64,000 bases of DNA from IMG/VR virus record IMGVR_UViG_3300027996_002186, positions 124,001-188,000 of that record; one strand, written 5' to 3'. The translations under genes and the position numbers were made by a program. Positions within the stretch are counted from its first letter, which is position 1; each line of letters starts with the position of its first letter. The notes beneath the pieces were generated by a model. The model had not been told where the DNA came from and ran no database searches. It saw nothing but the letters and a program-made list of their open reading frames with translations. This document shows positions 15,798 through 63,176 of this stretch, in pieces.

Positions 15798-16187
15798 ATG
15801 ATTAAAAAGTATAATTATTTCTTTGAGTCTAAGAAGACTAAGTTCCCTAATATTAAGAAAGTTGAAGTAGAAGGATTCTTTATTCATATAGGTAGAGACT
15901 CCAAATCTAACGACCACTTAACATTTAACGTTGCTGATGATAAAGACATCTGGATGCACGCTAAGGGTGTTCCTGGGAGTCATGTTATTATAAGAGTTAG
16001 AGAAAACTTACCAACTCAAGAAATACTAAGATATGTTGCTGAATTAGCTAAAAAGAATAGTAAAGCTAGTAAAGAAGATAATGTAACTGTTGTTTATTGC
16101 CAAAGAAAATTTGTTAAGAAAGAAAGTGGTATGAATGAGGGTCAAGTAAGAGTTGATTATATCAATGCCTACGAAATCGTAGTTTGA
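15798..16187 (+). CDS. NFACT-R (DUF814-type) RNA-binding domain protein with CTS-like N-terminus
   Basis: IGRDSKSNDHLTF...DIWMHAKGVPGSHVII...VVYCQRKFVKK...GQV; N-terminus MIKKYNYFFES. Confidence 0.85.
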   Translation: MIKKYNYFFESKKTKFPNIKKVEVEGFFIHIGRDSKSNDHLTFNVADDKDIWMHAKGVPGSHVIIRVRENLPTQEILRYVAELAKKNSKASKEDNVTVVYCQRKFVKKESGMNEGQVRVDYINAYEIVV

Positions 16188-16190
16188 TAT

Positions 16191-16200
16191 TTAATATATA
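16191..16200 (+). promoter_or_regulatory. Putative late promoter core TTAATATATA
   Basis: 24 nt upstream of ATG 16225. Confidence 0.55.
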
Positions 16201-16224
16201 AGATTAATAAAATAAATTTTTATA

Positions 16225-17580
16225 ATGGCAGGAGAAACTAAAAGAGTAAAATTTTCGGATAAATTACTAAAGATACTTAAAAGTATGGAGGATAATAATA
16301 GTTATCTAGCTTTTGAACTTCTTTGGATGAATGATCCAACTGCAAAATATCATAATGGCCTTAATATAACAAATGTTGATTGTGGTACAGATAAATCATC
16401 AGATTTTAATTTCACTGTTGTTATTGGTGGTAAGAAAAATATAATGAAAATTGGTAAATTCATTAGATATTACTTTTCTAATCTATTTAGTAGTGATGAG
16501 ATAACAAAATTTGCTCATGCTTTCAATAGAGTGAAGAATGGTGGTAAGGCTGAACAATCTGGTAAAAAAGTTGAAATACCTGAGTTTAGTTATAATCCAA
16601 AAGACCCTAGGTCTACATTCTTATCACTTGTTACAGAAACATACCCACACCCACATGAGGAGAAAGTTATGAAATACTTACCAAAAGACTTAGATAAAGA
16701 TGAATTTGGTAATTATTATAAAGTGATTCCTGGTGATGATACTACAATGTTTAGTTCTCACCTTGATACGGCTGATAGAAGTCCAGTTCCTACTAACCTA
16801 TTCACTAAAGAGGTAGATGGGGATGAGATAATCTATACTGATGGTAGTACAATATTAGGGGCTGATGATAAGTCTGGAGTTACTGTTATGATGTATATGA
16901 TGGTTCATAATATCCCAGGTATTTATTATTTCTTTATTGGTGAAGAAAGAGGTGGTATTGGTTCTAATCAATTAGCTGATGTTTATGATAAATTTGATTT
17001 CCTAAAAAATGTTAAGAAATGTATTTCTTTTGATAGAAGAAGAACAATTTCTGTTATAACACATCAAATGGGTGGTCGTTGTTGTTCTGATGCTTTTGGT
17101 ACAGGACTTTGTAAAGAGTACAATAAACAAGGACTTAACCTTTCATTGGATAATGGTGGCGTTTATACTGATTCTGCTTCATTTATGGATATTATTCCTG
17201 AGTGTACTAATTTATCTGTTGGTTATTTAAATGAACACACAGGTAGAGAAGAACAAAACATGACATTTTTAATACAGTTGTGTAAAACTTCTATTAATGT
17301 TGATTGGGCTGGATTACCAGTTGCTAGAAAAGTAGGTTTGAACCTTGATTTAGTGCAGAAGCACAAATCTTTAATTGATGTTATAAAAAATGCAGTATTT
17401 GAATTAGAGGTGAAGATGGTTGGGTTTGAGGATAAAATATATATAAGAATAGATTTAGATGATACTAATCTAGTAACTGTTTATGATACTTTGAATATTG
17501 TACAAAACTTACTTGATAAACATAAAGTAGATAGTATGTGTATTTTTACTGAAACATATCTTAAAATAGAATTAACATAA
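16225..17580 (+). CDS. M28/M20-family Zn peptidase-like protein with N-terminal extension (paralog 1)
   Basis: SHLDT, LGADDKSG, GEERGG, SFDRR, YTDSA, NLSVGYLNEH. Confidence 0.8.
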   Translation: MAGETKRVKFSDKLLKILKSMEDNNSYLAFELLWMNDPTAKYHNGLNITNVDCGTDKSSDFNFTVVIGGKKNIMKIGKFIRYYFSNLFSSDEITKFAHAFNRVKNGGKAEQSGKKVEIPEFSYNPKDPRSTFLSLVTETYPHPHEEKVMKYLPKDLDKDEFGNYYKVIPGDDTTMFSSHLDTADRSPVPTNLFTKEVDGDEIIYTDGSTILGADDKSGVTVMMYMMVHNIPGIYYFFIGEERGGIGSNQLADVYDKFDFLKNVKKCISFDRRRTISVITHQMGGRCCSDAFGTGLCKEYNKQGLNLSLDNGGVYTDSASFMDIIPECTNLSVGYLNEHTGREEQNMTFLIQLCKTSINVDWAGLPVARKVGLNLDLVQKHKSLIDVIKNAVFELEVKMVGFEDKIYIRIDLDDTNLVTVYDTLNIVQNLLDKHKVDSMCIFTETYLKIELT

Positions 17581-17581
17581 T

Positions 17582-18076
17582 ATGAAGAATATTAAGAATT
17601 ATAAGAAGTTCCTAGAAAAGGAAAATATAAGAGAGGATGAGAACTCATATCTTAATGATGATATTAACGATCCTTGGGGTGATCCAAGTGATAGATGGTC
17701 TGATCGGTCGGATTATGATGATGAGGGTTACCAGTATCTTAATGGTGGTGAGTCTAGATCTAGTGAGGATGATAATGATGATAGAGATGATGTTCAACAT
17801 TTACTTTACTTGTTAAGAACAATGTTTAAGAACAATGGTATTGAGGTTGAAATAGAACATAAGAACTTAGATATTATGATATATTGTGTTATGAATAGAA
17901 AGGAAAGATTAAAAGATGTTATTAATGTTTTAGATGTGGCTAATAAATTGAAGAAGGATGTATTACCACAATATGATTGTGAGTTTGAGATGTGGGAAAC
18001 TAGAAAAGGTAAACCAATGTTAACCTTTAACTTCTTTTATGATGAAGGTTTGAACGATGATCGTGTTCCATTTTAA
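17582..18076 (+). CDS. Acidic hypothetical protein with CTS-like N-terminus
   Basis: MKNIKNYKKFLE. Confidence 0.7.
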   Translation: MKNIKNYKKFLEKENIREDENSYLNDDINDPWGDPSDRWSDRSDYDDEGYQYLNGGESRSSEDDNDDRDDVQHLLYLLRTMFKNNGIEVEIEHKNLDIMIYCVMNRKERLKDVINVLDVANKLKKDVLPQYDCEFEMWETRKGKPMLTFNFFYDEGLNDDRVPF

Positions 18077-18077
18077 C

Positions 18078-18129
18078 TATAAACAATCCATTTTAACAAC
18101 TTTTAAATATTTTAGTATATTATATATAC
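18078..18129 (+). promoter_or_regulatory. tmRNA promoter with upstream AAACAATCCA box and TATATAC core
   Basis: tataaacaatcca is identical to 58921-58933; AATCCA lies 38 nt upstream of TATATAC. Confidence 0.6.
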
Positions 18130-18146
18130 ATTAATTACAAACACTT

Positions 18147-18526
18147 GGGGGTGTCATAGAATAGATTCGCAGAGTAAAGGTAGTTATGCAGGTATCGGAT
18201 TGTTAAATACCCGATTAATAAATTAAATAACAAAACAGTAAACGGAAACGTAACAGAAGTAGCAAGCAAAGAAGATTTAGTATTTGCTCTACAAAACAAC
18301 CTACTTAACGTAGGGGAGTTAGTTGAAGCTTAATAGAGGAAACTCTTGAAAATTTAACAACTGATTTACACAGTTAAAAAGGTAAGACCGTTATTTGATA
18401 ATTTTTAGAAGTCTTTTCAAAAAAATTATCTAGTTTGAAAGTTTAGAAAAACTTTCTAAGCCTGTAAATGAATAATTATTGTTAACTGAGGAAGACACGA
18501 TGGGCAGTACATCGTCATCTCCACAA
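18147..18526 (+). ncRNA. ssrA: tmRNA (one-piece); tag ORF 18244-18333 GNVTEVASKEDLVFALQNNLLNVGELVEA*
   Basis: 5' GGGGGTG pairs with CATCTCC-A (G3:U wobble); T-arm cgatg-GGCAGTA-catcg; about 380 nt; internal ORF after GTAAAC ending TAA TAG. Confidence 0.9.
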
Positions 18527-18529
18527 GAG

Positions 18530-18591
18530 CCGATTGAATACTTTCAATTGGATTTTTTAACCTCACTTCCTACATGGGAGTGAGGTTTTTT
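18530..18591 (+). terminator. Two tandem hairpins/terminators after tmRNA
   Basis: ccgattgaa/ttcaattgg and aacctcacttcc/gggagtgaggtt, each followed by a T-run. Confidence 0.8.
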
Positions 18592-18624
18592 AATGCTATA
18601 GAACTATGACGTATTGTTTTTGAT

Positions 18625-18651
18625 AAACTAATCTATTATTTTAAATATAAT
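18625..18651 (+). promoter_or_regulatory. Putative middle promoter AAAC-N17-TATAAT
   Basis: Directly upstream of NADAR. Confidence 0.55.
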
Positions 18652-18655
18652 AGTT

Positions 18656-19132
18656 ATGATTAATAAATTCGAAGGTCGCTGGAGATTTCTATCAAACTTC
18701 TATCCGTGTGTGGTAGAACACCAAGGTATATCATATCCATCAAATGAACATTATTATGTTGCTATGAAAGTGACGGATGAACAATTTATTAATGGTAGAT
18801 ATTATACCGCTGGTGATTTCAGAGAAATGATAGCGACAATACCAAGTGCTGCTATTGCTAAAAAGTTAGGACAGAAAATAAAGGTTCGTAAAGATTGGGA
18901 AGTTAAGAAGATTGAATTTATGAACTGGGGTGTTAGAGAAAAATTTAATAACAACTCAACTCTTCGAGAATTATTATTATCAACTGGTGACGATGAACTA
19001 ATCGAGGGTAATTTTCATAAAGATACTTTTTGGGGAGTTTGTAATGGAAAGGGTAAAAACCATCTTGGTAAAATTCTTATGGAAGTAAGAAGAGAGTTGA
19101 GAGGTGAGAAGAGAGTTGGTCTGTTTATTTGA
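18656..19132 (+). CDS. NADAR (YbiA-like) ADP-ribosylhydrolase family protein
   Basis: FLSNFYP, YPSNEHYYVAMK, AKKLG, W..KK..FM..GVREKF, LLSTG..ELIEG...DTFWG, GKNHLGKILMEVR. Confidence 0.9.
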   Translation: MINKFEGRWRFLSNFYPCVVEHQGISYPSNEHYYVAMKVTDEQFINGRYYTAGDFREMIATIPSAAIAKKLGQKIKVRKDWEVKKIEFMNWGVREKFNNNSTLRELLLSTGDDELIEGNFHKDTFWGVCNGKGKNHLGKILMEVRRELRGEKRVGLFI

Positions 19133-19143
19133 ATAAAAAAGGG

Positions 19144-19171
19144 AAACTTTTGATAAGATTGCTTCTATAAC
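19144..19171 (+). promoter_or_regulatory. Putative middle promoter AAAC-N18-TATAAC
   Basis: Upstream of the dam operon. Confidence 0.5.
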
Positions 19172-19226
19172 TAAAAGTAAGAAAAAATATAGAAAATAAT
19201 TTCTAAAAAATATAAAACCAATAAAA

Positions 19227-20931: not shown

Positions 20932-21136
20932 TAATACATTCCAGGTGAATTCGGCTTCTAATAAAAATGCTATTGTGGTTGATCCAGATGGATACACAAC
21001 TATTGATAAATTAATACTTGTTGATCAAAAAGATGGAACTAAGTGGGATTTTTCAATTTATGATGGTGAGGTATTAGTTGAGCCACATGGTAAATCAGAA
21101 AAAAGAGAATATAGAATCAATAAGGTTATTTCTTAA
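20915..21136 (+). CDS. Small hypothetical protein with C-terminal REYRINKVI motif
   Basis: ORF coupled to the MCP paralog. Confidence 0.65.
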   Translation: MAQQINNTFQVNSASNKNAIVVDPDGYTTIDKLILVDQKDGTKWDFSIYDGEVLVEPHGKSEKREYRINKVIS

Positions 21137-21584
21137 TTAATTTAATCTTTAAGTTACCATTTCCTTTTATTAGTCTATGATAAACACCCATAGGTATTTC
21201 TACAATACCCTCAATTACTTTTGGAAGTTGATTATCGATTTGAATCATCCAATCAGTTTCATTTATAGACTCTATAATTCTATCTTCTCTATCACGATGC
21301 CAAATAAATTCACCTGAATCAGTTTCTTGTTTAAATTCTCTGATAAATGTATTCTCTGATAACTGTTCTTCAATAAATGGTAATACAACGTCTGGGTTTT
21401 CATTTTGCCATTCTTTCAAAGCTTTCATATCAAATTCTTTTAATTCATTATCATATCCACATTGGTGACATAAATATTTTCTATCATCATTTATTTCAAT
21501 TTCCCAATTCCAATCACAGTTATCACAAGTAATTTCTTTGATTTTAGCGATTTCGAATATTTTATATGTTTCTAAGTGTTTCAT
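21126..21584 (-). CDS. CTS-tagged protein: Zn-ribbon (CDNC...CHQC) plus cupin-like C-terminal domain
   Basis: MKHLETYKIFE; WHRD.EDR and IPMGVYHRLIKG suggest a cupin fold. Confidence 0.6.
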   Translation of the reverse strand: MKHLETYKIFEIAKIKEITCDNCDWNWEIEINDDRKYLCHQCGYDNELKEFDMKALKEWQNENPDVVLPFIEEQLSENTFIREFKQETDSGEFIWHRDREDRIIESINETDWMIQIDNQLPKVIEGIVEIPMGVYHRLIKGNGNLKIKLIKK

Positions 21585-21604: not shown

Positions 21605-22174
21605 TTACCAATACCCAGGGTAGGTTCGCCCATTCCAAAGATGTCCGTATTTCGTGAGACGACAAGCCCAATATCCAGCAGTTGTTCTATCCTTTTTGGT
21701 TGAGCATTTATGTCTAGCCGCGAAGCTCTTTCTAGCATCTGGGTTACTAACTTTAGCTGTTAGTCCACCATGTACATCTCCAAAGGCAAGTTTTTTAACA
21801 TTACCAGTCTTTGGGTTTTTAACATAAACGTGATATTTCTTAGTCCCGCCTCTTTTAGGATAATTTAATTTAACTTCTTTACCCTTATACTCTGCTTCAT
21901 TTAATTCTTGAATATTTTCTATTGGTAAATCAAGTGGTACTAATTCATTATTAAACACTCCGAACCTACCAATATCTGTTGATTCGAATAATTCATTATC
22001 TATATCACACAATTCAACAGTATTAGAATCGAATAACTTTCTAGCTTCTTTTATTACTTCATAAAAAGCATCTGAACCAGGTCTAAAAACATTTTCAGTT
22101 ATAGGTTTAGAACTATCTAAATGGTATTTTAGATTCTCTGATATTTCTTTATATTGATTAAATTTGTGTATCAT
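21605..22174 (-). CDS. CTS-tagged protein with basic C-terminal domain (RKSFAARHKC...GYWAC)
   Basis: MIHKFNQYKEISE; several [LIF]-x-E sites precede the basic domain. Confidence 0.65.
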   Translation of the reverse strand: MIHKFNQYKEISENLKYHLDSSKPITENVFRPGSDAFYEVIKEARKLFDSNTVELCDIDNELFESTDIGRFGVFNNELVPLDLPIENIQELNEAEYKGKEVKLNYPKRGGTKKYHVYVKNPKTGNVKKLAFGDVHGGLTAKVSNPDARKSFAARHKCSTKKDRTTAGYWACRLTKYGHLWNGRTYPGYW

Positions 22175-22590
22175 TCTTCTACTTCATTTTCACCATCACT
22201 TGTAAATTCAGAGAAGTTAATAACACCAACACCATCACTCTCAACACATTCGCATCCGGGGCATCCACATTCACAGCCAGCTTCTCCGGTGCAATTATCA
22301 CAACAAGCACAATCTCCTGATAAAGTTTCATCACTTTCTTCTTCTAATTCATTCTCCATATCAATATTCTCAATATTCTCAATATTATCGATGTTAATCG
22401 TTATGAAGTTTTCAAACTTAACAATCTTATCCATTTCTTTTTTAAATGCCTTATCAACCTTTTCTTGGTCCTCAACAGATGTTGTGAATCCAGGTTCAAC
22501 ATCTTTATCAACTAGTTCTTTAGCATCAAATGTAATTTCTTGTGTTTCTTCTTCTTTTTTGGCTTCATTAAACCTTTTAATCTTTTTCAT
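22171..22590 (-). CDS. CTS-tagged acidic protein with metallothionein-like Cys cluster
   Basis: MKKIKRFNE; CACCDNCTGEAGCECGCPGCEC. Confidence 0.7.
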   Translation of the reverse strand: MKKIKRFNEAKKEEETQEITFDAKELVDKDVEPGFTTSVEDQEKVDKAFKKEMDKIVKFENFITINIDNIENIENIDMENELEEESDETLSGDCACCDNCTGEAGCECGCPGCECVESDGVGVINFSEFTSDGENEVEE

Positions 22591-22598: not shown

Positions 22599-22805
22599 TT
22601 ATTTCTTTTGGTACATTCCTTCCAGTACTTGGTACATAGCATCAACAACTCCATAAGAGTCAACTCCGAAGTCACCTTCATATTTTTCAGCAATTGAGAT
22701 TATATCCTTTTCAAGTTCTTCCCATTTATCTCCAGATCTTTGTTTTTTTAGAACATCATCCCAATTAAACTCTTCACTTTCGTTAAATTTCTTTAAGTGT
22801 TTCAT
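22599..22805 (-). CDS. CTS-tagged small protein
   Basis: MKHLKKFNE. Confidence 0.7.
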   Translation of the reverse strand: MKHLKKFNESEEFNWDDVLKKQRSGDKWEELEKDIISIAEKYEGDFGVDSYGVVDAMYQVLEGMYQKK

Positions 22806-23179
22806 TATTTACTACTTATTTTTTTAATTATCTGAGCACATTTTTCATACTCTTCTTTATCTTCATATTCAGTTAGAAACTCTCTTAATTGTTGAGTATC
22901 TGCCAATTCTAATTTTATTAGAAATTTAATTTCCTTTAATTCATCGAAGTTTTTTATTTCATGGTCAATTATTTTATCAACAATTTCTCTATCAAATTGT
23001 GACATTCCCATAAAATCATTCCAATCATTAATATCATTATCTTTTAAGAATTCTAAAATGTTAAATAAACAAGTATCTAATCTTGATTTTTTAGATGACT
23101 TATTTGTTTTTTTCTTATTAAATATCTTTCTAAAGAATTCTTCGTTTATAAATTCCATATAGCTATCGATTCTTATCAT
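22805..23179 (-). CDS. CTS-tagged protein with C-terminal UVR-like motif
   Basis: Likely start MIRIDSYMEFINE at 23179; EDKEEYEKCAQI at the C-terminus. Confidence 0.6.
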   Translation of the reverse strand: MIRIDSYMEFINEEFFRKIFNKKKTNKSSKKSRLDTCLFNILEFLKDNDINDWNDFMGMSQFDREIVDKIIDHEIKNFDELKEIKFLIKLELADTQQLREFLTEYEDKEEYEKCAQIIKKISSK

Positions 23180-23183
23180 TACA

Positions 23184-23227
23184 TATATATTAATTTTCTC
23201 TATCAAGAAATGTAAAATTAATATATA
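23184..23227. promoter_or_regulatory. Divergent pair of late promoter cores TTAATATATA (23184-23193 minus; 23218-23227 plus)
   Basis: Exact decamer on each strand facing the divergent operons. Confidence 0.65.
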
Positions 23228-35130: not shown

Positions 35131-35580
35131 ATGGGATTTAAAAAGTTAGTTAATTACTACGTATTACGCAAATCTTTAAAAGAAATCGAGATGAATAGAA
35201 TTTTAGAAAAAATATACAAGAAAATAAAAATTTCTACTAAAGAAAAGAAATTTTTGGATTTATATAATCGTACTACCGAAGAGGTTGCTAAGGATTTGAT
35301 GTTCTTGTCTAAAAATGCAACTTCTAGAAAGGTTAAAGAAATATTAGAAAGAGGTAAGAAAGTCATTTGTGATTTACATGATAGGGATGGTAAAATTGGA
35401 CTTGAGATACTTAGTATTGAGAATAATGTCGATTCTGTTACATGTGATGTTATTATGAGAAATGAGACACATCAATTACATGATAGATTTTTATATAATA
35501 TTATTTATAATAATATAAAAAAAGAGTATTCATTACAAGAACAAGACGAATATTATGAAAAAATAGAAGCTACGAAATGA
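35131..35580 (+). CDS. Hypothetical protein with DUF6576-like segment
   Basis: MNRILEKI......TKEKKFL. Confidence 0.65.
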   Translation: MGFKKLVNYYVLRKSLKEIEMNRILEKIYKKIKISTKEKKFLDLYNRTTEEVAKDLMFLSKNATSRKVKEILERGKKVICDLHDRDGKIGLEILSIENNVDSVTCDVIMRNETHQLHDRFLYNIIYNNIKKEYSLQEQDEYYEKIEATK

Positions 35581-35849
35581 TAAAGAAATTTAAACAATTT
35601 AATGAAGAAATATCTGGTACTGAATTGGTTGGTCCTATTGGTCCTGCTTATGGTGAGACGGGGTTACAGAATAAAACCATAAATTCACATGACACAAATG
35701 TTATTTATTCAGAGATGGATTCTAAGATATATACAATAGATGAATATAATGATATTTATGGTGAGTACCTTAAATTTGGTGGATCTCCGTTAGATGGATT
35801 TACAAAAGAAAATATAGATATAATATTGGATTTTTTACAAACTAATTAA
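35577..35849 (+). CDS. CTS-tagged small protein
   Basis: MIKKFKQFNEE. Confidence 0.7.
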   Translation: MIKKFKQFNEEISGTELVGPIGPAYGETGLQNKTINSHDTNVIYSEMDSKIYTIDEYNDIYGEYLKFGGSPLDGFTKENIDIILDFLQTN

Positions 35850-43082: not shown

Positions 43083-43607
43083 TCAGATTCTTTTATCTGG
43101 ACTTACAAAATCATTATAGGTGTCTGCCTTTACAACGAGGTAGGCATCTTCTAGTTCATACCAATTTCCTTCATCCACATCATCACCTCCTAATCCTCTA
43201 TTAGCAACATCATCAGTAAAAACTTTGAACTTATAAATTGAATAACCACCATCAAAATAAACAGCGATAACTTCATCACCGTCCTTAACAGAATCTCTTT
43301 CATCAGAAAGTTCTTTTAATTCATTAACATCAATTTCACTTGATCTTATTTTTTTGAAATCTTTTCCTAGATTTTGATGAACTTGTTTAGATATTAACTT
43401 AGCCATTTTCTCTTGAAGGTCACCCAATTCAAATGATTGTCCTGGTGTTATATCTCCTGATACTGTATCAAATTCTCCGTGTATATCAAAAAATAAATCA
43501 TTAATTTTATCTTCTAATAAATCTAATGTATATTTATAAATATCATCCTCTGTATGAGAAACCTTTTCAAAAGACTCAGTTATATATTCTGACCATTTTT
43601 TAATCAT
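43083..43607 (-). CDS. CTS-tagged acidic protein
   Basis: MIKKWSEYITE. Confidence 0.7.
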   Translation of the reverse strand: MIKKWSEYITESFEKVSHTEDDIYKYTLDLLEDKINDLFFDIHGEFDTVSGDITPGQSFELGDLQEKMAKLISKQVHQNLGKDFKKIRSSEIDVNELKELSDERDSVKDGDEVIAVYFDGGYSIYKFKVFTDDVANRGLGGDDVDEGNWYELEDAYLVVKADTYNDFVSPDKRI

Positions 43608-46883: not shown

Positions 46884-47279
46884 ATGAAATATTTAAAGAC
46901 GTTTGAAAATTACTCTCCAGTAAATGAAGAGGAAGAAGGAATAAGAAAGTTCTTTACTGGTCATGACAGTAGTGATGATAGAGATAAGGCTATGGTAGCT
47001 TTCAATAAAGCTTTAGATGATGCTGAAGAAGCTGCAAATAAAAATCCAAAGGGTTATTCGTTTAACAGAGAACGTTTAGAAAAAGAAGCTAGTGAAAATA
47101 ACTATAAAGGTGGATTAAGAATCCAAAGAGGTGGTAGAAAAGACAGATCACCCGGTCAAGCATCCGCTAATTCGAGTAGAATGTACGTTGTTTATGACGA
47201 TGGTGTTACTGGATTTGTAGATGTGTTTGTAAAACCAGCAGCTGCTAATAGAAAAGATAGTGGATTTAATAGACCATAA
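46884..47279 (+). CDS. CTS-tagged protein
   Basis: MKYLKTFENYSPVNE. Confidence 0.75.
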   Translation: MKYLKTFENYSPVNEEEEGIRKFFTGHDSSDDRDKAMVAFNKALDDAEEAANKNPKGYSFNRERLEKEASENNYKGGLRIQRGGRKDRSPGQASANSSRMYVVYDDGVTGFVDVFVKPAAANRKDSGFNRP

Positions 47280-49496: not shown

Positions 49497-50135
49497 TTAC
49501 TTGACCTTAATAGGTTCCCAATTTAAATTTGGAAGTCTTTCTTTTATAACCTTAGTTGCTTTTCTTAAAAATTTTGAATTATCATCATAGAATATAACTT
49601 TATTAACACCAGTTTCTTTAACAAGTTCAACTATTTTGTGACCTTTCCACTCACCCGCATTTTTTATTCTGGTTGGTAACATATGTAATCCATATTTTGG
49701 ATATTCAATTCCTAACTTTGATAAAACGGATATTAACTTTTCTTTTATTACTTCTGGTCTAGCTGTTACTATACATTTATTATCCACCTTATTATATAGG
49801 TCAATTAGTGGTTTTAATTCTGTTGGTAAACTCTCATCTGTTTGTGAAAATATATTTGGAGTTACTAGATATAATCTAGATTTTTTTCTAACCCAGTTTC
49901 CAAATTCTTTATATCTATATGTTGGGTCGTCAAGATATATGCGACCATTTTCCCATTTTAAATCTTCGATTTTACAACCTGATCTTCTAATAGAAATATC
50001 TAATAGGTCTTTGACTGAATAACTCTCCTTTAAGTATTTTAGAGCTAGTTCCTCAAAACTAGGAGTCTCTACTAATGTATCATCAAAATCAAATACATAT
50101 AAGGTATCATATTCTTCAAATCTGTTAATCCTCAT
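49497..50135 (-). CDS. HAD-superfamily phosphatase (RNA-repair-associated type), CTS-like N-terminus
   Basis: VFDFDDTL, IVTAR, FYDDN; MRINRFEE. Confidence 0.75.
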   Translation of the reverse strand: MRINRFEEYDTLYVFDFDDTLVETPSFEELALKYLKESYSVKDLLDISIRRSGCKIEDLKWENGRIYLDDPTYRYKEFGNWVRKKSRLYLVTPNIFSQTDESLPTELKPLIDLYNKVDNKCIVTARPEVIKEKLISVLSKLGIEYPKYGLHMLPTRIKNAGEWKGHKIVELVKETGVNKVIFYDDNSKFLRKATKVIKERLPNLNWEPIKVK

Positions 50136-52124: not shown

Positions 52125-52466
52125 TTATTTCTTTTCTATTGTTACTTCATAATAAGTACCATTTCTACCACCTACACTAAGTACTGGAAATTTCTCTTTC
52201 ATTTCTTTGAGAATTTCCTCATCAAAAGGCATATATACATAAAAAGCTTCTTTACCATCATTTTTCCATCCATCTCCATTCCAAATGAATGCTGTTTTAT
52301 CTGACCCAGGATCACTTACACCCTTGAACTTTTTACCTAAATCATGACCCTCATTACCTGAGTTGATATCTTTAACTTCTAAATCATTGTTTTGTAAGAA
52401 GGATTTAGCCATGTCAATTTCTTTAGATTCTACACTTTCGTTAAATTTTAACCAATTCTTAATCAT
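52125..52466 (-). CDS. CTS-tagged small protein
   Basis: MIKNWLKFNE. Confidence 0.7.
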   Translation of the reverse strand: MIKNWLKFNESVESKEIDMAKSFLQNNDLEVKDINSGNEGHDLGKKFKGVSDPGSDKTAFIWNGDGWKNDGKEAFYVYMPFDEEILKEMKEKFPVLSVGGRNGTYYEVTIEKK

Positions 52467-52939
52467 TATTTCTTTTTCTTTTTAGCTAAGATTGCTTTTT
52501 GTAATCCAGCTGGAAGTTTCTTTTGACCCGCAGTTAATCCTTTGGTATCTACTTTATCTTCCTTCTTATCTTCCTTCTTATCTTTAGTATCTTTCTTACC
52601 TTTAACATCTTTCTTATCATCCTTATCAACATCTTTACCTTCTTTTTTCTTACCTTTTTGTTTATCTAAGTAAGCTTTTAACCCAGCGTTCATGCCTTTT
52701 TTCTCAACTACTTGTGATTCTTCGTCACCCCAGAGTCTTATTTTTCTTTGGTTTTCTTTTTCTTCTAAATCTTCTTCTTCTTCATCTGATACGGAACCTA
52801 ACTGTCCTTCAAAATCTTCAATACCTTCAACATCATCGATTAAATCTGTATTTTCTTCTTCCGGATTGATATCATCTTCATTATTAAATCTACCAAGATC
52901 TCTAGGATCGTAGTTTTCAAATTTCTTTAGGTATTTCAT
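52466..52939 (-). CDS. CTS-tagged protein: acidic N-half, Lys-rich C-half (possible DNA-binding internal protein)
   Basis: MKYLKKFEN; KKDxK repeats; KLPAGLQKAILAKK; TTAATATATA (minus) at 52963-52972. Confidence 0.7.
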   Translation of the reverse strand: MKYLKKFENYDPRDLGRFNNEDDINPEEENTDLIDDVEGIEDFEGQLGSVSDEEEEDLEEKENQRKIRLWGDEESQVVEKKGMNAGLKAYLDKQKGKKKEGKDVDKDDKKDVKGKKDTKDKKEDKKEDKVDTKGLTAGQKKLPAGLQKAILAKKKKK

Positions 52940-53074
52940 ATATGTTAATATTTTTTATAACTTATATATTAAATTATATAATGTAATTTCTTGATTTATC
53001 TTCTTTTGTTAATGTTTTTAAAAAAAAACATTTTATTTCACCTTTTTTCTAGGTGGTTTTTAATATATATTAAT

Positions 53075-53887
53075 ATGAATAGTATAAAGAGATATGGTGA
53101 ATATGTGAGTTTCGATGACATGGCCTTTGAGTTTGTTGACTCATTCCAAACGATGATAAAAGAGAATGATGAGTTGGATGATGATGGTGATTGGAAAACA
53201 CATTGGAAAAAATTTAAAAACGATTTAAAATTACACGGTGGTCTTATCGGTACATTTGGTGCTGGTATCGGTGCTTTCATACCCGTTGTTCAATCAATGA
53301 TGGGTAATATGAATATATCAACCGAGGTCACTCTTGAAATTTCTGTATTACTCACTATATGTTCATTGACTATAATTTATTTAGAAGAAAAGAAATTTAA
53401 AAATTATGAGGAAGAAGCTTTATTAACAAAAGATTCTAAATCTATGTTAGAAGAATTGAAGATGAGAGGTATTGGAAACGGCCTTGTTAAATTGGTTATC
53501 AAATCTTTTGAATCTGTGACTAATATATTTTCGGTTATTGGAAAACATTTAGGAGCTCTTGTTGGAGGTGTTATTGATATGTTTACTTATACAGCTTTAA
53601 TGATTCCTGTTATGAATGGTATATTGTATTTAATTGGTAAGTATGAACTTACTCCTGAAACAGTTATTCAAAATCTTATAGGCCTTGCTGCTGGTATAGG
53701 TACATTAGTTGCTAAACATGGCATAAATTATATAATTAATAAGATTAAAGGAAAATTCAAAATAGAAAAAGGTGATGTCCTTGATGAACTCGACACACCA
53801 AAAATCCAAAAATTTAATCTTTATGGATCCGATATCGATGATATGTTTGATGATATTGAACCTATAAACGATGAGAACTTAATTTAA
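53075..53887 (+). CDS. Membrane protein with CTS-like N-terminus
   Basis: Likely start MNSIKRYGEY, 5 nt after TTAATATATA; 4-5 hydrophobic helices. Confidence 0.65.
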   Translation: MNSIKRYGEYVSFDDMAFEFVDSFQTMIKENDELDDDGDWKTHWKKFKNDLKLHGGLIGTFGAGIGAFIPVVQSMMGNMNISTEVTLEISVLLTICSLTIIYLEEKKFKNYEEEALLTKDSKSMLEELKMRGIGNGLVKLVIKSFESVTNIFSVIGKHLGALVGGVIDMFTYTALMIPVMNGILYLIGKYELTPETVIQNLIGLAAGIGTLVAKHGINYIINKIKGKFKIEKGDVLDELDTPKIQKFNLYGSDIDDMFDDIEPINDENLI

Positions 53888-58918: not shown

Positions 58919-58920
58919 GC

Positions 58921-58971: not shown

Positions 58972-58997
58972 ATATAGAAATTAGAAACGAATAAAAA

Positions 58998-59069: not shown

Positions 59070-59084
59070 CTATTATTATAATAA

Positions 59085-59298: not shown

Positions 59299-59309
59299 AA
59301 ATATTATAT

Positions 59310-59355
59310 AAAAGACCAGATTAACTACAAATGTAGAGAGTCTGGTCTTTTTTTT
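59310..59355 (+). terminator. Terminator-like hairpin between the Y-like RNAs and Ro60
   Basis: aaaagaccaga/tctggtctttt plus inner ctac/gtag and a long T-run. Confidence 0.8.
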
Positions 59356-59384
59356 GAATTAAAAATTAAATAAAAATAAAAATT

Positions 59385-60836
59385 ATGTCAAAATTTAACA
59401 CAACAATGCCAAAGGCAATAACAAAGACTTCCAATTTAGCTGGTGGGGAATCTTATTCACAATCTAATGAGTTAGTGTTGGTTTCGCTATTATTAACATC
59501 ATTTGTTAATACTCAATTTTATAGAGATGGTGGTAATTCTTTAGTAGATTTGAAAAATATTTCTGAGAAGGTTAAGGATAAAGAGTTTGTTGCGAAAGCT
59601 GCTATATTTGCTCGTGACCGTTTCGGGATGAGAAGTATTACTCACGCTTTAGCTGGTGAATTGACTTCACAACTTACTGGTCAAGAGTGGGCTAAGGATT
59701 TCTACGAGAAAGTGGTTGTTCGTGTTGATGATATGACAGAAATATTATCTTACTACTTAGAAAACAAAACATCTAAAGATAATCCAAAGTTTCCAAATGC
59801 TTTGAAGAAGGGATTTGCGAAGGCTTTTGATAAATTTGATGGATATAATCTATCTAAGTATAAAGGTGAGAATAAGGAAGTGAAGTTAGTTGATATTGTG
59901 AACTTAGTTCACCCTGTTCCGACTTCTAGAAATAAAGAAGCGCTTGAGTCACTTATCAGAGGTGAGTTGAAAAACACACAAACTTGGGAAGCTAAGTTAT
60001 CTGAAGCTGGTCAAAAGGCTGATTCTAAGGAAGATTTGGAAAAATTAAAATCAGATGCTTGGGGAGAGTTAATCTCAACTGGTAAGATTGGATATTTCGC
60101 TCTTTTGAGAAACTTGAGAAATATTATAACTCAATCACCTACTTCTATTAAGGAAGCTTGTGAGATGTTAGTTAATGAAAAGTTAATCAAGAAGTCAAGA
60201 ATTCTTCCATTCCGTTTCGCTACGGCTTATGAGGAAATCAATAAGATTGGTTCTTCTAAGGATGTCAGAGATGTACTTATTGCTCTTAATCAAGCACTTG
60301 ATATATCAGTAGCTAACGTTCCTAAGTTCGAAGGAGAAACACTTGTAGTTATGGACGTTTCAGCTTCTATGAGGGGTATAGCATCTGACACGGCTTCTTT
60401 ATTCGGTGCAATTCTATCAAAGGTTAATAACTGTGATGTTATGACATTTGCTAGAGAAGCTAACTATATGGCATATAATCCAATGGATTCTGTGTTAACT
60501 ATTAGAGATGGTTTTAGATTTGCTGGTGGTGGAACAAACTTTAAGTCAATTTTCACAACTGCTAACAAGAAGTATGATAGAATAATAATTCTTTCAGATA
60601 TGCAAGGATGGGTTGGTTATACTACACCATCTGATGAATTTAACCAATATAAGAATATGTTTGGTGCTACACCATTCGTTTATTCTTGGGATCTCGCTGG
60701 GTATGGTACATTGCAGTTCCCAGAAAATAATGTCTTTGCTTTAGCCGGATTTTCCGATAAAGTATTCGATATTATGAAGTTGATGGAGGTCGACAAAAAG
60801 GCTCTCTTCAATGAGATAAAGTCTATCCAGCTTTAA
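59385..60836 (+). CDS. rsr: Ro60/Rsr TROVE-vWA ribonucleoprotein
   Basis: NLAGGESY, ARDRFGMRS, RVDDMTEIL, IGYFALLRNLRNI, ILPFRF, MIDAS DVSASM, GGTNF, LSDMQ. Confidence 0.93.
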   Translation: MSKFNTTMPKAITKTSNLAGGESYSQSNELVLVSLLLTSFVNTQFYRDGGNSLVDLKNISEKVKDKEFVAKAAIFARDRFGMRSITHALAGELTSQLTGQEWAKDFYEKVVVRVDDMTEILSYYLENKTSKDNPKFPNALKKGFAKAFDKFDGYNLSKYKGENKEVKLVDIVNLVHPVPTSRNKEALESLIRGELKNTQTWEAKLSEAGQKADSKEDLEKLKSDAWGELISTGKIGYFALLRNLRNIITQSPTSIKEACEMLVNEKLIKKSRILPFRFATAYEEINKIGSSKDVRDVLIALNQALDISVANVPKFEGETLVVMDVSASMRGIASDTASLFGAILSKVNNCDVMTFAREANYMAYNPMDSVLTIRDGFRFAGGGTNFKSIFTTANKKYDRIIILSDMQGWVGYTTPSDEFNQYKNMFGATPFVYSWDLAGYGTLQFPENNVFALAGFSDKVFDIMKLMEVDKKALFNEIKSIQL

Positions 60837-60839
60837 CAA

Positions 60840-60880
60840 AAACACACTTCTTTGAAGTGGGTTTTTTGTTTTAATATATA
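60840..60880 (+). terminator. Terminator hairpin (60840-60867) followed by late promoter TTAATATATA (60871-60880)
   Basis: cacttc/gaagtg stem plus T-run; exact decamer. Confidence 0.65.
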
Positions 60881-60901
60881 CAAAAAAGAAATATAAATAT
60901 T

Positions 60902-61201
60902 ATGGCTATTAAAAAATTTAATGAAGCTTGGGATGAGAATTCTGGTGAGTATGTTGATTACAATGGATATATAGATCAACACGGAGAATTTGGTGATATA
61001 CATGATTCTTTAGGATCGAGTAAATATGGTGTGGGTGAGTTTAATAATATGATGGCTGAGTTAAATGTTAATGAAAATGAATTACCACAAGAATTGATTG
61101 ATATGATAGAAGATATCAGAGGTGATTTAGGTGGAATCAAAGGTAAAATAGTAGATTTATTCTCGGCCTTAACAAAAGAAGATATGTCATATTTAAAATA
61201 A
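60902..61201 (+). CDS. CTS-tagged acidic protein
   Basis: MAIKKFNE. Confidence 0.75.
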   Translation: MAIKKFNEAWDENSGEYVDYNGYIDQHGEFGDIHDSLGSSKYGVGEFNNMMAELNVNENELPQELIDMIEDIRGDLGGIKGKIVDLFSALTKEDMSYLK

Positions 61202-61524
61202 TGAAACATTTGAAAACATTTAATGAGGGAAATTTACCAGAAAGAGAGGTAGTTTTTACTAATAAGAGAAATAGACATATGGTTTTTTCTGTGTTTAAAA
61301 CTCCTGATGGTAAAATAACAAGAATCGAAAAATTACCAAATATTAGATTCCCTTTTCAAGTAGGTCAACTATTTAATAGAACTATTGAAGTATGGGCTTG
61401 TAATAATAATTACCTAATGGATGGTAAAGATACTTGTCCTGAGAAAAAGATTATGGGTATGAGAGCTTCTGATATACCAAAGGGTCATGAACTAAGACAC
61501 ATATTCCCACATAAATTCAAATAA
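61201..61524 (+). CDS. CTS-tagged protein
   Basis: MKHLKTFNE. Confidence 0.75.
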   Translation: MKHLKTFNEGNLPEREVVFTNKRNRHMVFSVFKTPDGKITRIEKLPNIRFPFQVGQLFNRTIEVWACNNNYLMDGKDTCPEKKIMGMRASDIPKGHELRHIFPHKFK

Positions 61525-61544
61525 TAAAATTAATATATAGAATA

Positions 61545-61829
61545 ATGAAACATTTAATAAAATTTAATGAGGGTGTTATAGGTAGAAGTGATGATGATTT
61601 TGATCCACCTAAATCTAAGTGTCCTAGTTACGAAGAAGCTTTAGAAAAAATGTGTAAATATATAGCAGATCAGATATACGGTGATTATATGGATGGATCT
61701 ATGAATCCTAGTTATGATGGTCAGTCAGGTTGTGAAGATACATTATCAATATTATATGGTGTTAGTAGGAAGAAGGTACGTAGGGATGTTGATACTATCA
61801 TCGAAGAATACAGAACAGGAAAAAGATAA
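61545..61829 (+). CDS. CTS-tagged protein
   Basis: MKHLIKFNE; TTAATATATA at 61530-61539. Confidence 0.75.
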   Translation: MKHLIKFNEGVIGRSDDDFDPPKSKCPSYEEALEKMCKYIADQIYGDYMDGSMNPSYDGQSGCEDTLSILYGVSRKKVRRDVDTIIEEYRTGKR

Positions 61830-61837
61830 TTATAATT

Positions 61838-62245
61838 ATGAAATATTTAAGAAAATTTAACGAAGAATTAGAGAGTGAGGGATTAGATACTATCAATGAT
61901 TTGAAAGAAATATTTGAAAATGGTATTAATGTTCCGGTATTCTTAGAAGATTTATTATCTGGTACAGGTATTATACTTGTAACAACAGAGGGTAAGGTAT
62001 TTGAAAAATCAAAATCAGGAGAATGGAAAGAATATGAATCACCAGAAGCATTTAAAAATGAGACAGGTGCTTCTTTGGACGAAGAATATGTAGGTAGTAA
62101 AAGTCAACAATTGTTGAATTTAATAACTGGTGCCGATGGTGAGTATGATGGTATTGATGATTATAGAGTAGGTTATATAGAATCAATTTATTTTGATGAT
62201 GAGCCAACTGATATGTTAAAAAAATTATTAAGAAATTATGATTAA
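61838..62245 (+). CDS. CTS-tagged protein
   Basis: MKYLRKFNE. Confidence 0.75.
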   Translation: MKYLRKFNEELESEGLDTINDLKEIFENGINVPVFLEDLLSGTGIILVTTEGKVFEKSKSGEWKEYESPEAFKNETGASLDEEYVGSKSQQLLNLITGADGEYDGIDDYRVGYIESIYFDDEPTDMLKKLLRNYD

Positions 62246-62729
62246 AAAGTGGAAACAATTCGTTAATGAATCAAATAGTGATTATAGTTTATTGAACTTC
62301 TTTCAGGAGATGCAATCATTTCCAGCGGCGGGAGTAGATAAACAAGACATTGAAGAAGCGTCTAAACCTGTGAATAAAATGAAGACAGTTAGTAATGTTC
62401 CTGAACTTCAAGGATTGTTAGATGATTGGAGTGGTGGGAAGTATGATGAAGATCCTGGATATTTAGTAAATGAATTAAGAGGTTTACTTGAGAGTAATAA
62501 AATTGATGAGAATCTATCAGCAGAATTAGATAAAGAAACAATATTACATATTTTAAATTTGAAAGTTAAAGAAGGTCTAAATAAGAAAGTAAATTATGAA
62601 TTATGGGATTTTGATGATGCCTACAAAGGTGTCTCTGATGGTGGTACAGTAAATGCTTATAAATCTGGTAGAAAAAAAGCTTTTAAGGAAGTTTTGGATA
62701 TGATAAATGATTTTGATAAAAATAAATAA
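62238..62729 (+). CDS. CTS-tagged protein
   Basis: MIKKWKQFVNE. Confidence 0.75.
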   Translation: MIKKWKQFVNESNSDYSLLNFFQEMQSFPAAGVDKQDIEEASKPVNKMKTVSNVPELQGLLDDWSGGKYDEDPGYLVNELRGLLESNKIDENLSAELDKETILHILNLKVKEGLNKKVNYELWDFDDAYKGVSDGGTVNAYKSGRKKAFKEVLDMINDFDKNK

Positions 62730-62735
62730 AGAAAG

Positions 62736-63176
62736 ATGATTAAAAAGTGGAGTCAATTTAACGAAAGTAAAGCAGAGAAACCAGGTGAAAATATACCGGG
62801 TTCTGTTAAGGTAAATTTAACTGATGAGGATGTTAACGCATTTACAGATAACACATCTTTACAAAAATTAATTTCTGATGATAAAGTTGCATTACTTGAT
62901 GGAGAAGCTTGGTATTGGGAAGATGATATGACTACTAAAGGTATTTTAGATCAATATTTAGAAATACCTGGTACTGTTGAAGAAGAACCAACTGGAGATT
63001 TAGTTAGTGAGAATTTTCAATGGTCGGATGATGAAATCAATAAATTAGAAATAGATATTCATGATGAGATTGCTAAAGGTATGACTAAGGAAGAATTTTT
63101 AGAATATTCTTCTAGTTACTCTTTTGGTATGGGTGAGGTTTTTGAAGTATTGAAAAAGTGGGCTTTTAGACCTTAA
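62736..63176 (+). CDS. CTS-tagged protein
   Basis: MIKKWSQFNE. Confidence 0.75.
   Translation: MIKKWSQFNESKAEKPGENIPGSVKVNLTDEDVNAFTDNTSLQKLISDDKVALLDGEAWYWEDDMTTKGILDQYLEIPGTVEEEPTGDLVSENFQWSDDEINKLEIDIHDEIAKGMTKEEFLEYSSSYSFGMGEVFEVLKKWAFRP

Follow-up and report, generated by a model that had tools for sequence, protein, structure and literature searches.

In phage T4, the internal proteins IPI, IPII, IPIII and Alt are loaded into the head by a short N-terminal label, the capsid targeting sequence (CTS), which is shared by otherwise unrelated, hypervariable small proteins and is cut after Glu (PMC3012670, PMC5694885, PMC8442874). T4 carries three IPs, which are basic DNA-binding proteins, plus a few core proteins. 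The giant phages phiKZ, 201phi2-1 and SPN3US also have a gp21-related protease that cuts many head-internal proteins after Glu, and dozens of different proteins are packaged in them (PMC5694885). A sequence-only reading of a 64,000-nt stretch of a marine virus genome (positions 124,001 to 188,000 of IMGVR_UViG_3300027996_002186; here, the window) had claimed that about 20 unrelated late genes share a T4 CTS-like N-terminal tag. It had suggested that the tagged proteins are an injected host-takeover or anti-defense payload far larger than that of T4. Therefore, we asked whether the tag is real and whether it can be read in this way. We found that it most resembles the T4 label, and if it works the same way these giant phages would carry a very large protein cargo, although this is so far inferred from sequence alone in an uncultured clade.

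We first confirmed the observation: all 20 ORF starts and peptides were as listed. About 13 fit a tight consensus, M-K-[H/Y]-[L/I]-K-K-F-N-E or MIKKWxxFNE, and seven (15798, 17582, 21584, 22174, 23179, 43607 and 53075) are looser variants. Twelve scored 13 or more in our PSSM, and 22590 (MKKIKRFNE), which is also canonical, was missing from our gene calls. The pattern [KRQT]F[NE][EN] at residues 4 to 12 occurred in 11 genes against 0.08 expected, and FNE occurred in 8 against 0.17. Thus, the tag is far beyond chance. The protein bodies from residue 14 onward gave no BLASTP match to one another below E = 0.009. The tag codons vary synonymously (TTT/TTC, AAT/AAC, GAA/GAG, AAA/AAG and TTA/TTG/CTA), and in 72 tags of the sequenced relative LR745206 the synonymous usage equals genome usage, so selection acts on the peptide. 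As had been claimed, the enzymes identified in the window carry no tag: DNA polymerase, DnaB-like and XPD-like helicases, ribonucleotide reductase, thymidylate synthase, Dam methylase, glutamine synthetase and a GluRS-like protein.

We then asked how widely the tag is distributed. The window is a marine relative of the 634- to 735-kb "Mahaphage" genomes. In LR745206, 72 of 938 ORFs carry the tight tag (0.6 expected), and about 130 more than expected carry a looser one. Thus, the set is not about 20 genes but a genome-wide class, 8 to 19% of the ORFs in the relative. The exact tag gave more than 120 loci in IMG/VR viral contigs, with 119 of 126 carrying LR745206 homologues, against 6 stretches in 596 Gb of cellular genomes. 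The tag is therefore specific to this megaphage clade.

The tagged genes of the window begin directly after the gene for the major capsid protein (MCP). The conserved core gene at 15798 to 16187 (+) encodes an NFACT-R domain protein (Pfam NFACT-R_1, 8e-16), as had been proposed. Its N terminus, MIKKYNYFFE, is loose but genuine, because more than 120 clusters of orthologues at 67% identity or more mostly begin MIKKFNSFNE. In its AF2 model, residues 1 to 14 have a pLDDT below 50 although they are nearly invariant, while the domain at residues 17 to 129 is above 90. The ORFan at 17582 to 18076 (+) has the long variant MKNIKNYKKFLE (PSSM 7.6), and its syntenic LR745206 orthologue keeps the tag. 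A five-gene tagged operon follows on the minus strand. Its first gene, an ORFan at 22805 to 23179 (-), begins MIRIDSYMEFINE, with the T4-CTS-like heptad Y-M-E-F-I-N-E. Next are a 68-aa ORFan at 22599 to 22805 (-) with the exact consensus MKHLKKFNE (PSSM 26.6; orthologue 87% identical) and an acidic Cys-rich protein (9 Cys) at 22171 to 22590 (-), the orthologue of which keeps the tag. This is the protein that had been described as a Cys-rich metal binder. The ORFan at 21605 to 22174 (-), MIHKFNQYKEISE, is fused behind the 22590 homologue in relatives. The ORFan at 21126 to 21584 (-), MKHLETYKIFE, has an N-terminal CxxC region plus a C-terminal domain that stands alone and untagged in relatives.

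Further downstream, tagged ORFans with LR745206 orthologues were found at 35577 to 35849 (+), MIKKFKQFNE (PSSM 19.9); at 43083 to 43607 (-), MIKKWSEYITE, which contains the T4-CTS-like heptad W-S-E-Y-I-T-E and has an identical tag in the orthologue; and at 46884 to 47279 (+), MKYLKTFEN (PSSM 19.4). A weakly tagged HAD-like protein is encoded at 49497 to 50135 (-), where MRINRFEEYD is followed by FDFDDTL (PSSM 13.4). Its assignment as a HAD phosphatase is only weakly supported, resting on sub-threshold NCBIfam hits plus the DxDxT motif, with no Pfam hit at 0.01. The ORFan at 52125 to 52466 (-), MIKNWLKFNE (PSSM 18.7), has no LR745206 orthologue and adjoins another at 52466 to 52939 (-), MKYLKKFEN (PSSM 20.8). 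The weakest tag, MNSIKRYGEY, is that of 53075 to 53887 (+), which is the only tagged protein here with a TM-like helix (residues 85 to 103) and so the only counterpart of the membrane protein that had been proposed as cargo. The last array contains ORFans at 60902 to 61201 (+), MAIKKFNE (PSSM 17.6); 61201 to 61524 (+), MKHLKTFNE (PSSM 25.1); 61545 to 61829 (+), MKHLIKFNE (PSSM 22.6); 61838 to 62245 (+), MKYLRKFNE (PSSM 24.2); 62238 to 62729 (+), MIKKWKQFVNE (PSSM 13.3); and 62736 to 63176 (+), MIKKWSQFNE (PSSM 19.1), the last with an orthologue. In a relative, the body of 61201 sits behind an extra 160-aa domain, with the tag still at the N terminus. Where two tagged genes are fused, the internal copy decays to KFSNFND. 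Thus, the position of the tag is constrained.

The tagged genes share a promoter motif with the head genes. The motif TTAATATATA occurs 14 times in the window against 2.3 expected, always just upstream of a gene, and every tagged gene in the window lies behind it or its relatives TATATATA and TATAAATA, either directly or within an operon. A copy at 23184 to 23193 (-), 4 nt upstream of 23179, heads the five-gene operon and is paired with a divergent copy at 23218 to 23227 that heads the 1955-aa gene. Copies at 60871 to 60880 (+), which heads the last array, and at 61530 to 61539, 5 nt upstream of 61545, serve the genes there, and others lie 23 nt upstream of 52939 and 5 nt upstream of 53075. 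In LR745206, 65 of 72 tagged genes sit in TTWATATATA operons against 343 of 866 others (P = 7e-18). In the window the same motif precedes the MCP, the portal and the giant structural genes. That these promoters are late rests on analogy with the T4 late promoter and on position only.

We next examined the head module, which is in the T4 order of portal, protease and MCP. The gp20-type portal gene at 7080 to 8777 (+) is preceded by TTAATATATA at 7043 to 7052 and matches phrog_213 (9e-58) and, by BLASTP, T4 gp20 (2e-22). The ORF at 11766 to 13907 (+) encodes a gp21-type prohead protease (residues ~1 to 240) fused to a helical, scaffold-like extension, and is the presumed reader and cutter of the tag. 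It matches phrog_207 (1.6e-30), and the clade profile hits the T4 gp21 structure 5JBL at 7e-4. Pfam S77 reaches only 18.8 bits against a cutoff of 27, but His72 and Ser127/128 are invariant and align with T4 GELNHP and GVSSRG. Inside this ORF, at 12629 to 13075 (+), are about ten 14-aa repeats NIAYSEYIAENLDK (TRF period 42, 9.5 copies), which are conserved in four relatives. Each holds Y-S-E and I-A-E, and together these form the heptad Y-S-E-Y-I-A-E. The array was modeled as one long helix at pLDDT 55 to 76, in an otherwise poor single-sequence model. The gp23-type MCP gene at 13993 to 15723 (+) follows TATATATA at 13954 to 13961. Its product matches Pfam Gp23 (2.7e-26), is 78% identical to the LR745206 protein, and has a conserved propeptide that ends ...WMSEYAEFHSINE, followed by NA.

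To compare the tag with that of T4, we read the IP leaders from AF158101: MKTYQEFIAE for IPII and IPIII and MKTFKEF... for IPI. The main tag, MK[HY]LKKFNE, shares M1, K2, a hydrophobic residue at 4 and F7 with them, and in the 50 kb of T4 examined only the three IP genes begin this way. However, the main tag class is not the T4 CTS: its Glu is at position 9 rather than 10, our PSSM scores the T4 IPs negatively, and nine residues cannot prove homology. A subclass comes closer, since it carries the T4 heptad Ar-x-E-Ar-I-x-E. The strict heptad Ar-x-E-Ar-[ILV]-x-E, which T4 YQEFIAE fits, occurs 23 times in the 196,451-residue LR745206 proteome. Eight are within the first residues of proteins (about 0.24 expected), ten are in the protease-scaffold repeats, one is in a small scaffold-like ORF and only four are elsewhere. 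In addition, the tags end in [FY]-[NE]-E, the scaffold repeats hold Y-S-E and I-A-E, and the MCP propeptide ends I-N-E. All three fit cleavage after Glu, as in T4, phiKZ and SPN3US (PMC5694885).

With moderate confidence, somewhat better than even, we favor the explanation that the tag is a capsid-targeting propeptide of the T4 type. In this view, tagged proteins would be made from the same promoter class as the head genes, and their first 9 to 12 residues, of the form basic-hydrophobic-x-x-aromatic-x-Glu, would dock them onto the assembling prohead core, built around the protease whose C-terminal extension carries about ten copies of a closely related heptad. After the shell closes, the protease would cut after the Glu of [F/Y/I]-x-E, removing the tag, trimming the MCP propeptide and chopping the repeat array into short peptides. 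The mature, mostly small, soluble and acidic cargo would stay in the head with the DNA and would probably enter the host with it. Our analysis establishes the tag, its statistics and peptide-level selection, its restriction to viruses and to this clade, its location outside the folded domain, the T4-type head genes with conserved catalytic residues, the shared heptad and the promoter association, whereas docking, cleavage, retention in the virion and injection are inferred. Thus, the sequence-only interpretation is partly supported.

Other observations bear on this in both directions. The tagged genes are hypervariable ORFans, often in tandem arrays, and six of the 20 have no orthologue in the nearest genome, much like the T-even IP loci (PMC3012670). 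A virion share of 15 to 20% of genes is normal for jumbo phages. SPN3US has about 50 head proteins (PMC5694885), but up to about 130 tagged proteins in one genome would be unprecedented. The tagged bodies are mostly acidic (median pI 4.8), unlike the T4 IPs. In four marine metatranscriptomes the MCP is well covered, but tagged genes 15798 and 17582 are barely covered; if packaged, they are not abundant. A few weakly tagged proteins look like cytoplasmic enzymes (Toprim/primase-like and HAD-like), and the untagged stand-alone form of the 21584 C-terminal domain also counts against this reading.

It is possible, although unlikely, that the tag is a trans-acting N-terminal signal read by a machine other than the prohead: a degradation tag (for example, a ClpX/Lon-type N-degron used for timing), a docking peptide for a phage chaperone or intracellular compartment, or a processing signal for another peptidase, such as the PepT-like enzyme at 16225 in the head module. 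A peptide-level, disordered, N-terminal, virus-specific linear motif fits any trans-acting reader, and the number of tagged proteins, their acidity and their low RNA coverage are easier to accept if they are not all virion cargo. However, this does not explain why one subclass equals the T4 CTS heptad, why that heptad is otherwise almost confined to the protease-scaffold repeats, why the tags share their hydrophobic-x-Glu ending with the MCP propeptide, or why tagged genes share the head-gene promoter motif. The tag has no hydrophobic core, so it is not a Sec, Tat or lipoprotein signal, and only 2.8% of tagged proteins have a TM-like stretch.

It is less likely still that the shared start is a trace of descent with no signal function, left by a huge, rapidly diverging family or by cassettes exchanged by recombination at a conserved 5' end. 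Tagged genes do often lie in tandem (25 of 72 have a tagged neighbor against about 11 expected), a few small paralogue groups exist, and T-even IP loci were reportedly proposed to exchange cassettes at the conserved CTS-coding sequence (work cited in PMC3012670). However, of 186 candidates, 159 are BLAST singletons, hardly more clustered than random untagged genes. Synonymous sites in the tag are not conserved, so there is no DNA-level recombination site, and a 9-residue block that survives while the rest diverges beyond recognition itself implies strong selection on the peptide. Orthologues also switch between tag classes, for example MIKKFNSFNE and MKYLKYFE in the NFACT-R family.

A role in translation, as an A/U-rich, unstructured start or favorable nascent peptide for mRNAs without a Shine-Dalgarno sequence or with very short leaders in a Bacteroidetes-type host, fits the AT-rich tag codons, the absence of visible Shine-Dalgarno sequences and the several tagged genes that start 4 to 5 nt after the promoter motif (which suggests near-leaderless mRNAs), but is very unlikely, since synonymous usage in the tag equals genome usage, AT-richness does not require the fixed positions (hydrophobic at 4, F at 7, E at 9), the most highly expressed genes (MCP and portal) lack the tag, the motif is essentially absent from the cellular genomes searched, including AT-rich ones, and among non-start ATGs with 30 or more open codons only 11 of 4957 reach the score, most of them miscalled true starts.

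Compared with the T4 CTS, the tag is likewise a short N-terminal peptide on otherwise unrelated, hypervariable small proteins, beginning M-K-x-hydrophobic-x-x-F and ending in hydrophobic-x-Glu, in a phage with gp20, gp21 and gp23 homologues, and the heptad of T4 YQEFIAE recurs in a subclass (for example, MKIRKYIEFITE in LR745206, and MIKKWSEYITE and ...SYMEFINE in the window). It differs in scale, with 20 in 64 kb and 72 to about 130 per genome in the relative, in the Lys-rich first half and Glu9 of the dominant tag, and in the mostly acidic putative cargo. The propeptides of phiKZ, 201phi2-1 and SPN3US head and ejection proteins are mostly long (about 80 to 130 residues), do not form a common short consensus and are cut at S/A/G-x-E rather than aromatic-x-E (PMC5694885). 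The T4 scaffold and core proteins (gp22, gp67, gp68 and gp21) offer a parallel to the proposed role of the repeat array, as helical core components that carry many protease sites and are degraded to short peptides; we detected no sequence homology to gp22, and the exact 14-residue periodicity and the fusion to the protease are features of this clade. Encapsulin cargo-loading peptides are a functional analogy only: they too are short portable peptides that direct unrelated cargo into an HK97-fold shell, but they are usually C-terminal, bind the shell protein directly and are not cleaved.

To place the phage before asking what its shared N-terminal tag might do, we first compared its major capsid protein (MCP) with those of related phages. 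The 64-kb window is about 30% G+C, and its MCP (13993-15723) is 78% and 73% identical to proteins encoded in LR745206.1 (634,780 bp) and LR756502.1 (642,428 bp), about 52% identical to those of the 636 kb and 735 kb genomes, and 30% identical to those of Lak phages. These are the largest "Mahaphage" genomes of Al-Shayeb et al., predicted to infect Bacteroidetes (PMC7162821). Sequencing runs that hold the window at full identity are marine or seawater metagenomes, and a marine sister lineage, Mar_Mega_1, has been described (PMC9723777). Five IMG/VR viral contigs (our loci L029, L061, L066, L085, and L105) encode proteins 100% identical to the window's tagged genes. One of them (L066) is the 483,262-bp IMGVR_UViG_3300027996_002186; the same phage is therefore already in IMG/VR at near-genome length. 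The Mahaphage, Mar_Mega_1, and phage G papers do not mention an N-terminal motif, and string searches of the literature for the tag found nothing.

The sequence-only reading had reported about 20 unrelated genes that begin with the same short motif, and this observation held: every one of the 20 starts and peptides is as it was reported. Thirteen of the tags are canonical and seven are looser. The tetrapeptide class [KRQT]F[NE][EN] lies within residues 4 to 12 of 11 window genes, against 0.08 expected from its internal frequency, and FNE does so in 8 genes against 0.17. With the first 13 residues removed, the 20 proteins gave no BLASTP match to each other better than E = 0.009 in a tiny database, and the codons of the tag vary synonymously. 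One of the looser cases, the NFACT-R protein at 15798, is shown to be genuine by its more than 120 orthologue clusters. Most of these begin MIKKFNSFNE and some begin MKYLKYFE, so the tag classes are interchangeable.

This led us to ask how far the tag extends in a whole genome. We assembled LR745206 from 13 pieces and scored all N-termini with a PSSM built from the tight matches. We found that 72 of 938 ORFs score 8 or more, against 0.63 expected from internal decoys, and that 44 score 14 or more against none. The consensus is M-K-[H/Y]-[L/I]-[K/R]-[K/R/T]-F-[N/E]-E, with F at residue 7. A looser pattern (hydrophobic-x-x-aromatic-x(0-2)-E within the first residues) matches 180 ORFs against 50 expected and reveals further classes, such as MKYLKKYK[I/L]FES and M..KKYxEFIxE. 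That the motif might be no more frequent than codon bias predicts had been set beforehand as a condition that would refute the tag. However, among 4,957 non-start ATGs with 30 or more open codons in all six frames, only 11 reach the score, and most of those are true starts that our crude gene caller missed. Synonymous codon usage inside the 72 tags matches genome usage for F, N, E, K, H, Y, L, I, and R. Selection is therefore on the peptide, and chance or AT bias is rejected as the source of the motif.

We next asked whether the tag is widespread in phages or a general feature of AT-rich cells. A scan of IMG/VR with the back-translated exact tag returned at least 120 loci, in which 238 of 1,555 ORFs are tagged. 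Of 126 loci, 119 carry homologues of LR745206 proteins, so they are fragments of the same clade, and a wide spread over many phage types is rejected. A tblastn search for cultured relatives, with a tagged ORFan against 50,697 phage records, found only LR745206. The same pattern occurs in only 6 stretches, in 4 MAGs, of 596 Gb of bacterial and archaeal genomes, and the contigs with several hits also carry megaphage homologues; a general feature of AT-rich cells is thus rejected too. Among these are JALOAD01 contigs of a "Candidatus Muiribacterium halophilum" MAG (L134 to L136 and L139), which carry several exact tags and homologues of LR745206 proteins and are probably megaphage contigs binned into a bacterial MAG. 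Among other clade members, tags are enriched in LR756504 (16 against 5 expected) and present in LR756501 and LR756502. Two samples totalling about 90 kb of LR756500 and 42 kb of Lak-B5 show no enrichment, although Lak ORF calling may be affected by recoding.

The tagged proteins are mostly ORFans. Of the 72 LR745206 proteins, 67 have no Pfam family, and the few hits are an M15 peptidase, a Zn-protease-like protein, a Toprim/primase-like protein, a MazE-like protein, and DUF6576. In the window only NFACT-R is confirmed, while the HAD assignment for 50135 is weak. The proteins are small (median 141 aa), hydrophilic, rarely membrane-like, and acidic, with a median pI of 4.8 against 5.6 for other ORFs. 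We considered whether they could be one paralogous family, but 186 candidates fall into 169 BLAST clusters with 159 singletons, which, with the lack of matches between the window proteins, rejects this. Fourteen of the 20 window genes have syntenic, still-tagged orthologues in LR745206 and six have none. Tagged genes often sit in tandem arrays.

To determine where the tag lies relative to the folded protein, we examined an AlphaFold model of the NFACT-R protein built from 40 homologues (mean pLDDT 86.5). Residues 1 to 14 are below 50, whereas the domain from about residue 17 is above 90. Yet I2, F8, E10, K12, K13, and K15 are invariant or nearly so. This is the signature of a linear motif that acts in trans. 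Natural rearrangements also keep the tag at the very N terminus. In one relative, the body of 61201 lies behind an extra 160-residue domain, with the tag still first. In relatives, 22590 and 22174 form one 327-328-aa protein whose internal junction is only a decayed tag-like stretch (KFSNFND or IKKASEF), whereas the split window gene 22174 starts with MIHKFNQYKE. In relatives, the C-terminal domain of 21584 is a stand-alone untagged 87-89-aa ORF, in one case start-stop coupled to a tagged upstream ORF. The tag does not fit a Sec, Tat, or lipoprotein signal, which would have a hydrophobic core of about 10 or more residues (or a twin-Arg motif or lipobox Cys) after a basic N-region: it is 9 to 12 residues long, with two hydrophobic positions followed by acidic or polar residues.

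We then examined the promoters of the tagged genes. TTAATATATA occurs 14 times in the window against 2.3 expected, always upstream of a start. With its variant TTTATATATA it precedes the portal, the MCP, the 1955-aa and 1274-aa genes, the PepT-like peptidase, and every tagged operon of the window. In LR745206, 65 of 72 tagged genes lie in operons headed by TATATATA or TAATATAT, against 343 of 866 other ORFs (Fisher p = 7e-18). The sequence-only reading called this motif late; that name is by analogy only and rests on its resemblance to the T4 late promoter TATAAATA and on the genes it precedes. At 23184-23227 and 52963-53073, back-to-back divergent copies of TTAATATATA drive operons on both strands, and at 53060-53073 the two copies overlap as a palindrome. 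In the genes starting at 23179, 53075, 61545, 15798, and 38854 the promoter-like motif ends only 4 to 5 nt before the start codon, while in the others it ends 21 to 34 nt before. This suggests that some mRNAs are leaderless or nearly so, and no Shine-Dalgarno sequences are visible anywhere. Untagged accessory genes include a TROVE (Ro60-like) protein directly upstream of the tagged array (59385-60836, +), a glutamine synthetase (2668-3750, -), and a 282-aa Glu/Gln-tRNA-synthetase catalytic-domain protein (4462-5310, -) that is preceded by TTAATATATA.

Contigs of four marine metatranscriptomes cover the MCP gene and an ORF-free stretch at 18155-18532 but barely cover tagged genes 15798 and 17582, and they gave no transcription starts. 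This neither supports nor excludes packaging, but it argues against very high abundance of these two. The ORF-free gap (18147-18532, +) is the most deeply covered piece in all four runs (depth 30.5, 27, 10.2, and 18.2, above the MCP). It has a TTATATATAC motif at 18120-18129 and a terminator-like hairpin near 18560-18593, and the sequence at 18120-18141 repeats the MCP upstream region. ARAGORN and Rfam gathering thresholds find nothing, but the Rfam tmRNA model aligns end to end (1-374) at only 8.8 bits. It is a candidate abundant divergent tmRNA-like RNA; the Mar_Mega_1 paper reports one tmRNA (PMC9723777).

One criterion for a targeting sequence of the T4 type is a head assembled with gp20 portal, gp21 protease, and gp23 MCP homologues, and we looked at the head module for these. 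The window encodes a gp20-type portal (phrog_213 9e-58; BLASTP to T4 gp20 2e-22), a gp23-type MCP (Pfam Gp23 2.7e-26), and a 713-aa protein (ORF 11766-13907, +) whose first ~240 residues are a gp21-type prohead protease (phrog_207 1.6e-30). The protease is a divergent relative: its score to Pfam Peptidase S77 (PF03420) is 18.8 bits, below the gathering cutoff of 27, and phmmer searches of the PDB with the MCP and with the protease found nothing. However, a profile of six clade members hits the T4 gp21 structure 5JBL at 7e-4, and His72 and Ser127/128, in GE-x-x-H-P and V-S-S-R-x-x-G contexts, are invariant in the six and align with T4 GELNHP and GVSSRG. The protease is fused to about ten 14-residue repeats, NIAYSEYIAENLDK (12629-13075, +; found by TRF), followed by an acidic low-complexity stretch and a conserved C-terminal domain. 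It looks like a protease-scaffold fusion and is conserved across the 634-735 kb genomes; the repeats are conserved in LR745206, LR756502, LR756504, and LR756501 and degenerate in LR756500. A single-sequence model, poor overall (pLDDT 42.6) and usable only for the repeat, predicts the repeats as one long helix. Each repeat has Y-S-E and I-A-E, the hydrophobic-x-Glu form after which T4, phiKZ, and SPN3US proteases cut (PMC5694885). The MCP propeptide is conserved as WMSEYAE[F/Y]H.[I/M]NE followed by N[A/V], and its start resembles, weakly, the T4 gp23 propeptide (KKWSPVLE against NKWKPLLE). A PepT/M20-like metallopeptidase (16225-17580, +; tripeptidase-like; PDB 3GB0 7e-6, TIGR01883 1e-8, phrog_4191 8e-63) sits in the head module behind its own TTAATATATA. 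It is possible, though speculative, that it clears the short peptides released by the prohead protease.

The interpretation in the sequence-only reading, that the tag loads an injected protein cargo into the capsid, is partly supported. The set is much larger than the 20 genes it saw, and the mechanism best supported is a T4-type capsid-targeting propeptide, cut after Glu by the gp21-type protease, which we hold to be somewhat more likely than not. What our analysis establishes is the tag itself; that the tag suffices for encapsidation, that the protease removes it, and that the mature proteins are present in virions and injected are all inferred for this uncultured clade, for which literature searches found no virion proteome. 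The main rival, another trans-acting N-terminal signal, is possible but considerably less likely. Descent without function fits the data poorly and is improbable. An effect on translation fits them poorly as well and is very unlikely.

If the tag is a loading signal, it would explain what a sizeable share of the unknown genes of 0.6-0.7 Mb phages are for, and it would give a sequence-only way to list the capsid cargo of phages nobody can grow. It would also point to a rich source of early-acting host-takeover or anti-defence proteins and would offer a very short portable tag for loading foreign proteins into large capsids. A bolder view, which the data allow but which we regard as tentative and less likely than not, is that the largest known phages load on the order of a hundred different, mostly acidic ORFan proteins into the capsid through a 9-residue tag that imitates one repeat of their own protease-linked scaffold. 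In this view the virion would deliver a host-takeover or anti-defence proteome of unprecedented complexity, and the tag would let that injected proteome be read directly from metagenomic sequence for an uncultured clade. If the tag does something else, it is still a strongly selected, virus-specific linear motif on 8-19% of a proteome, and it needs an explanation.

Finally, we compared the tag with T4 sequence directly. T4-type targeting sequences are conserved N-terminal peptides of 10 to 20 residues on otherwise unrelated proteins, and the tagged proteins fit this description. The peptide ends in the prohead-protease site, hydrophobic-x-Glu, at the level of sequence: [FY]-[NE]-E lies at residues 7 to 9 in 32 of 32 seed tags. 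T4 IPII and IPIII begin MKTYQEFIAE and IPI begins MKTFKEF; the CTS string is also printed in PMC8442874. The main megaphage tag shares M1, K2, a hydrophobic residue at 4, and F7, but it otherwise differs, and the T4 IPs score negatively in our PSSM. The heptad Ar-x-E-Ar-[ILV]-x-E, which T4's YQEFIAE fits, is shared by a tag subclass. It occurs 23 times in the whole LR745206 proteome: eight at N termini, ten in the protease-scaffold repeats, one in a small ORF outside the head module (460435-460686, -) with a scaffold-type repeat (LEKNISYSEYISENL), the only such copy outside the protease gene, and four elsewhere. In the window it occurs in the ten repeats and in tagged genes 43607 and 23179 only. 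The tags therefore look like single copies of the scaffold repeat, which suggests that they may join the core by the same contacts and be cut by the same enzyme. That tag, MCP propeptide, and scaffold repeats share one short motif also suggests that T4-type targeting sequences, whose mechanism is still unclear even for T4, may work by imitating a scaffold repeat. Relative to the literature, a signal of this kind is already known from T4, and what is new here is a putative form of it that is specific to this megaphage clade and very large in scale.
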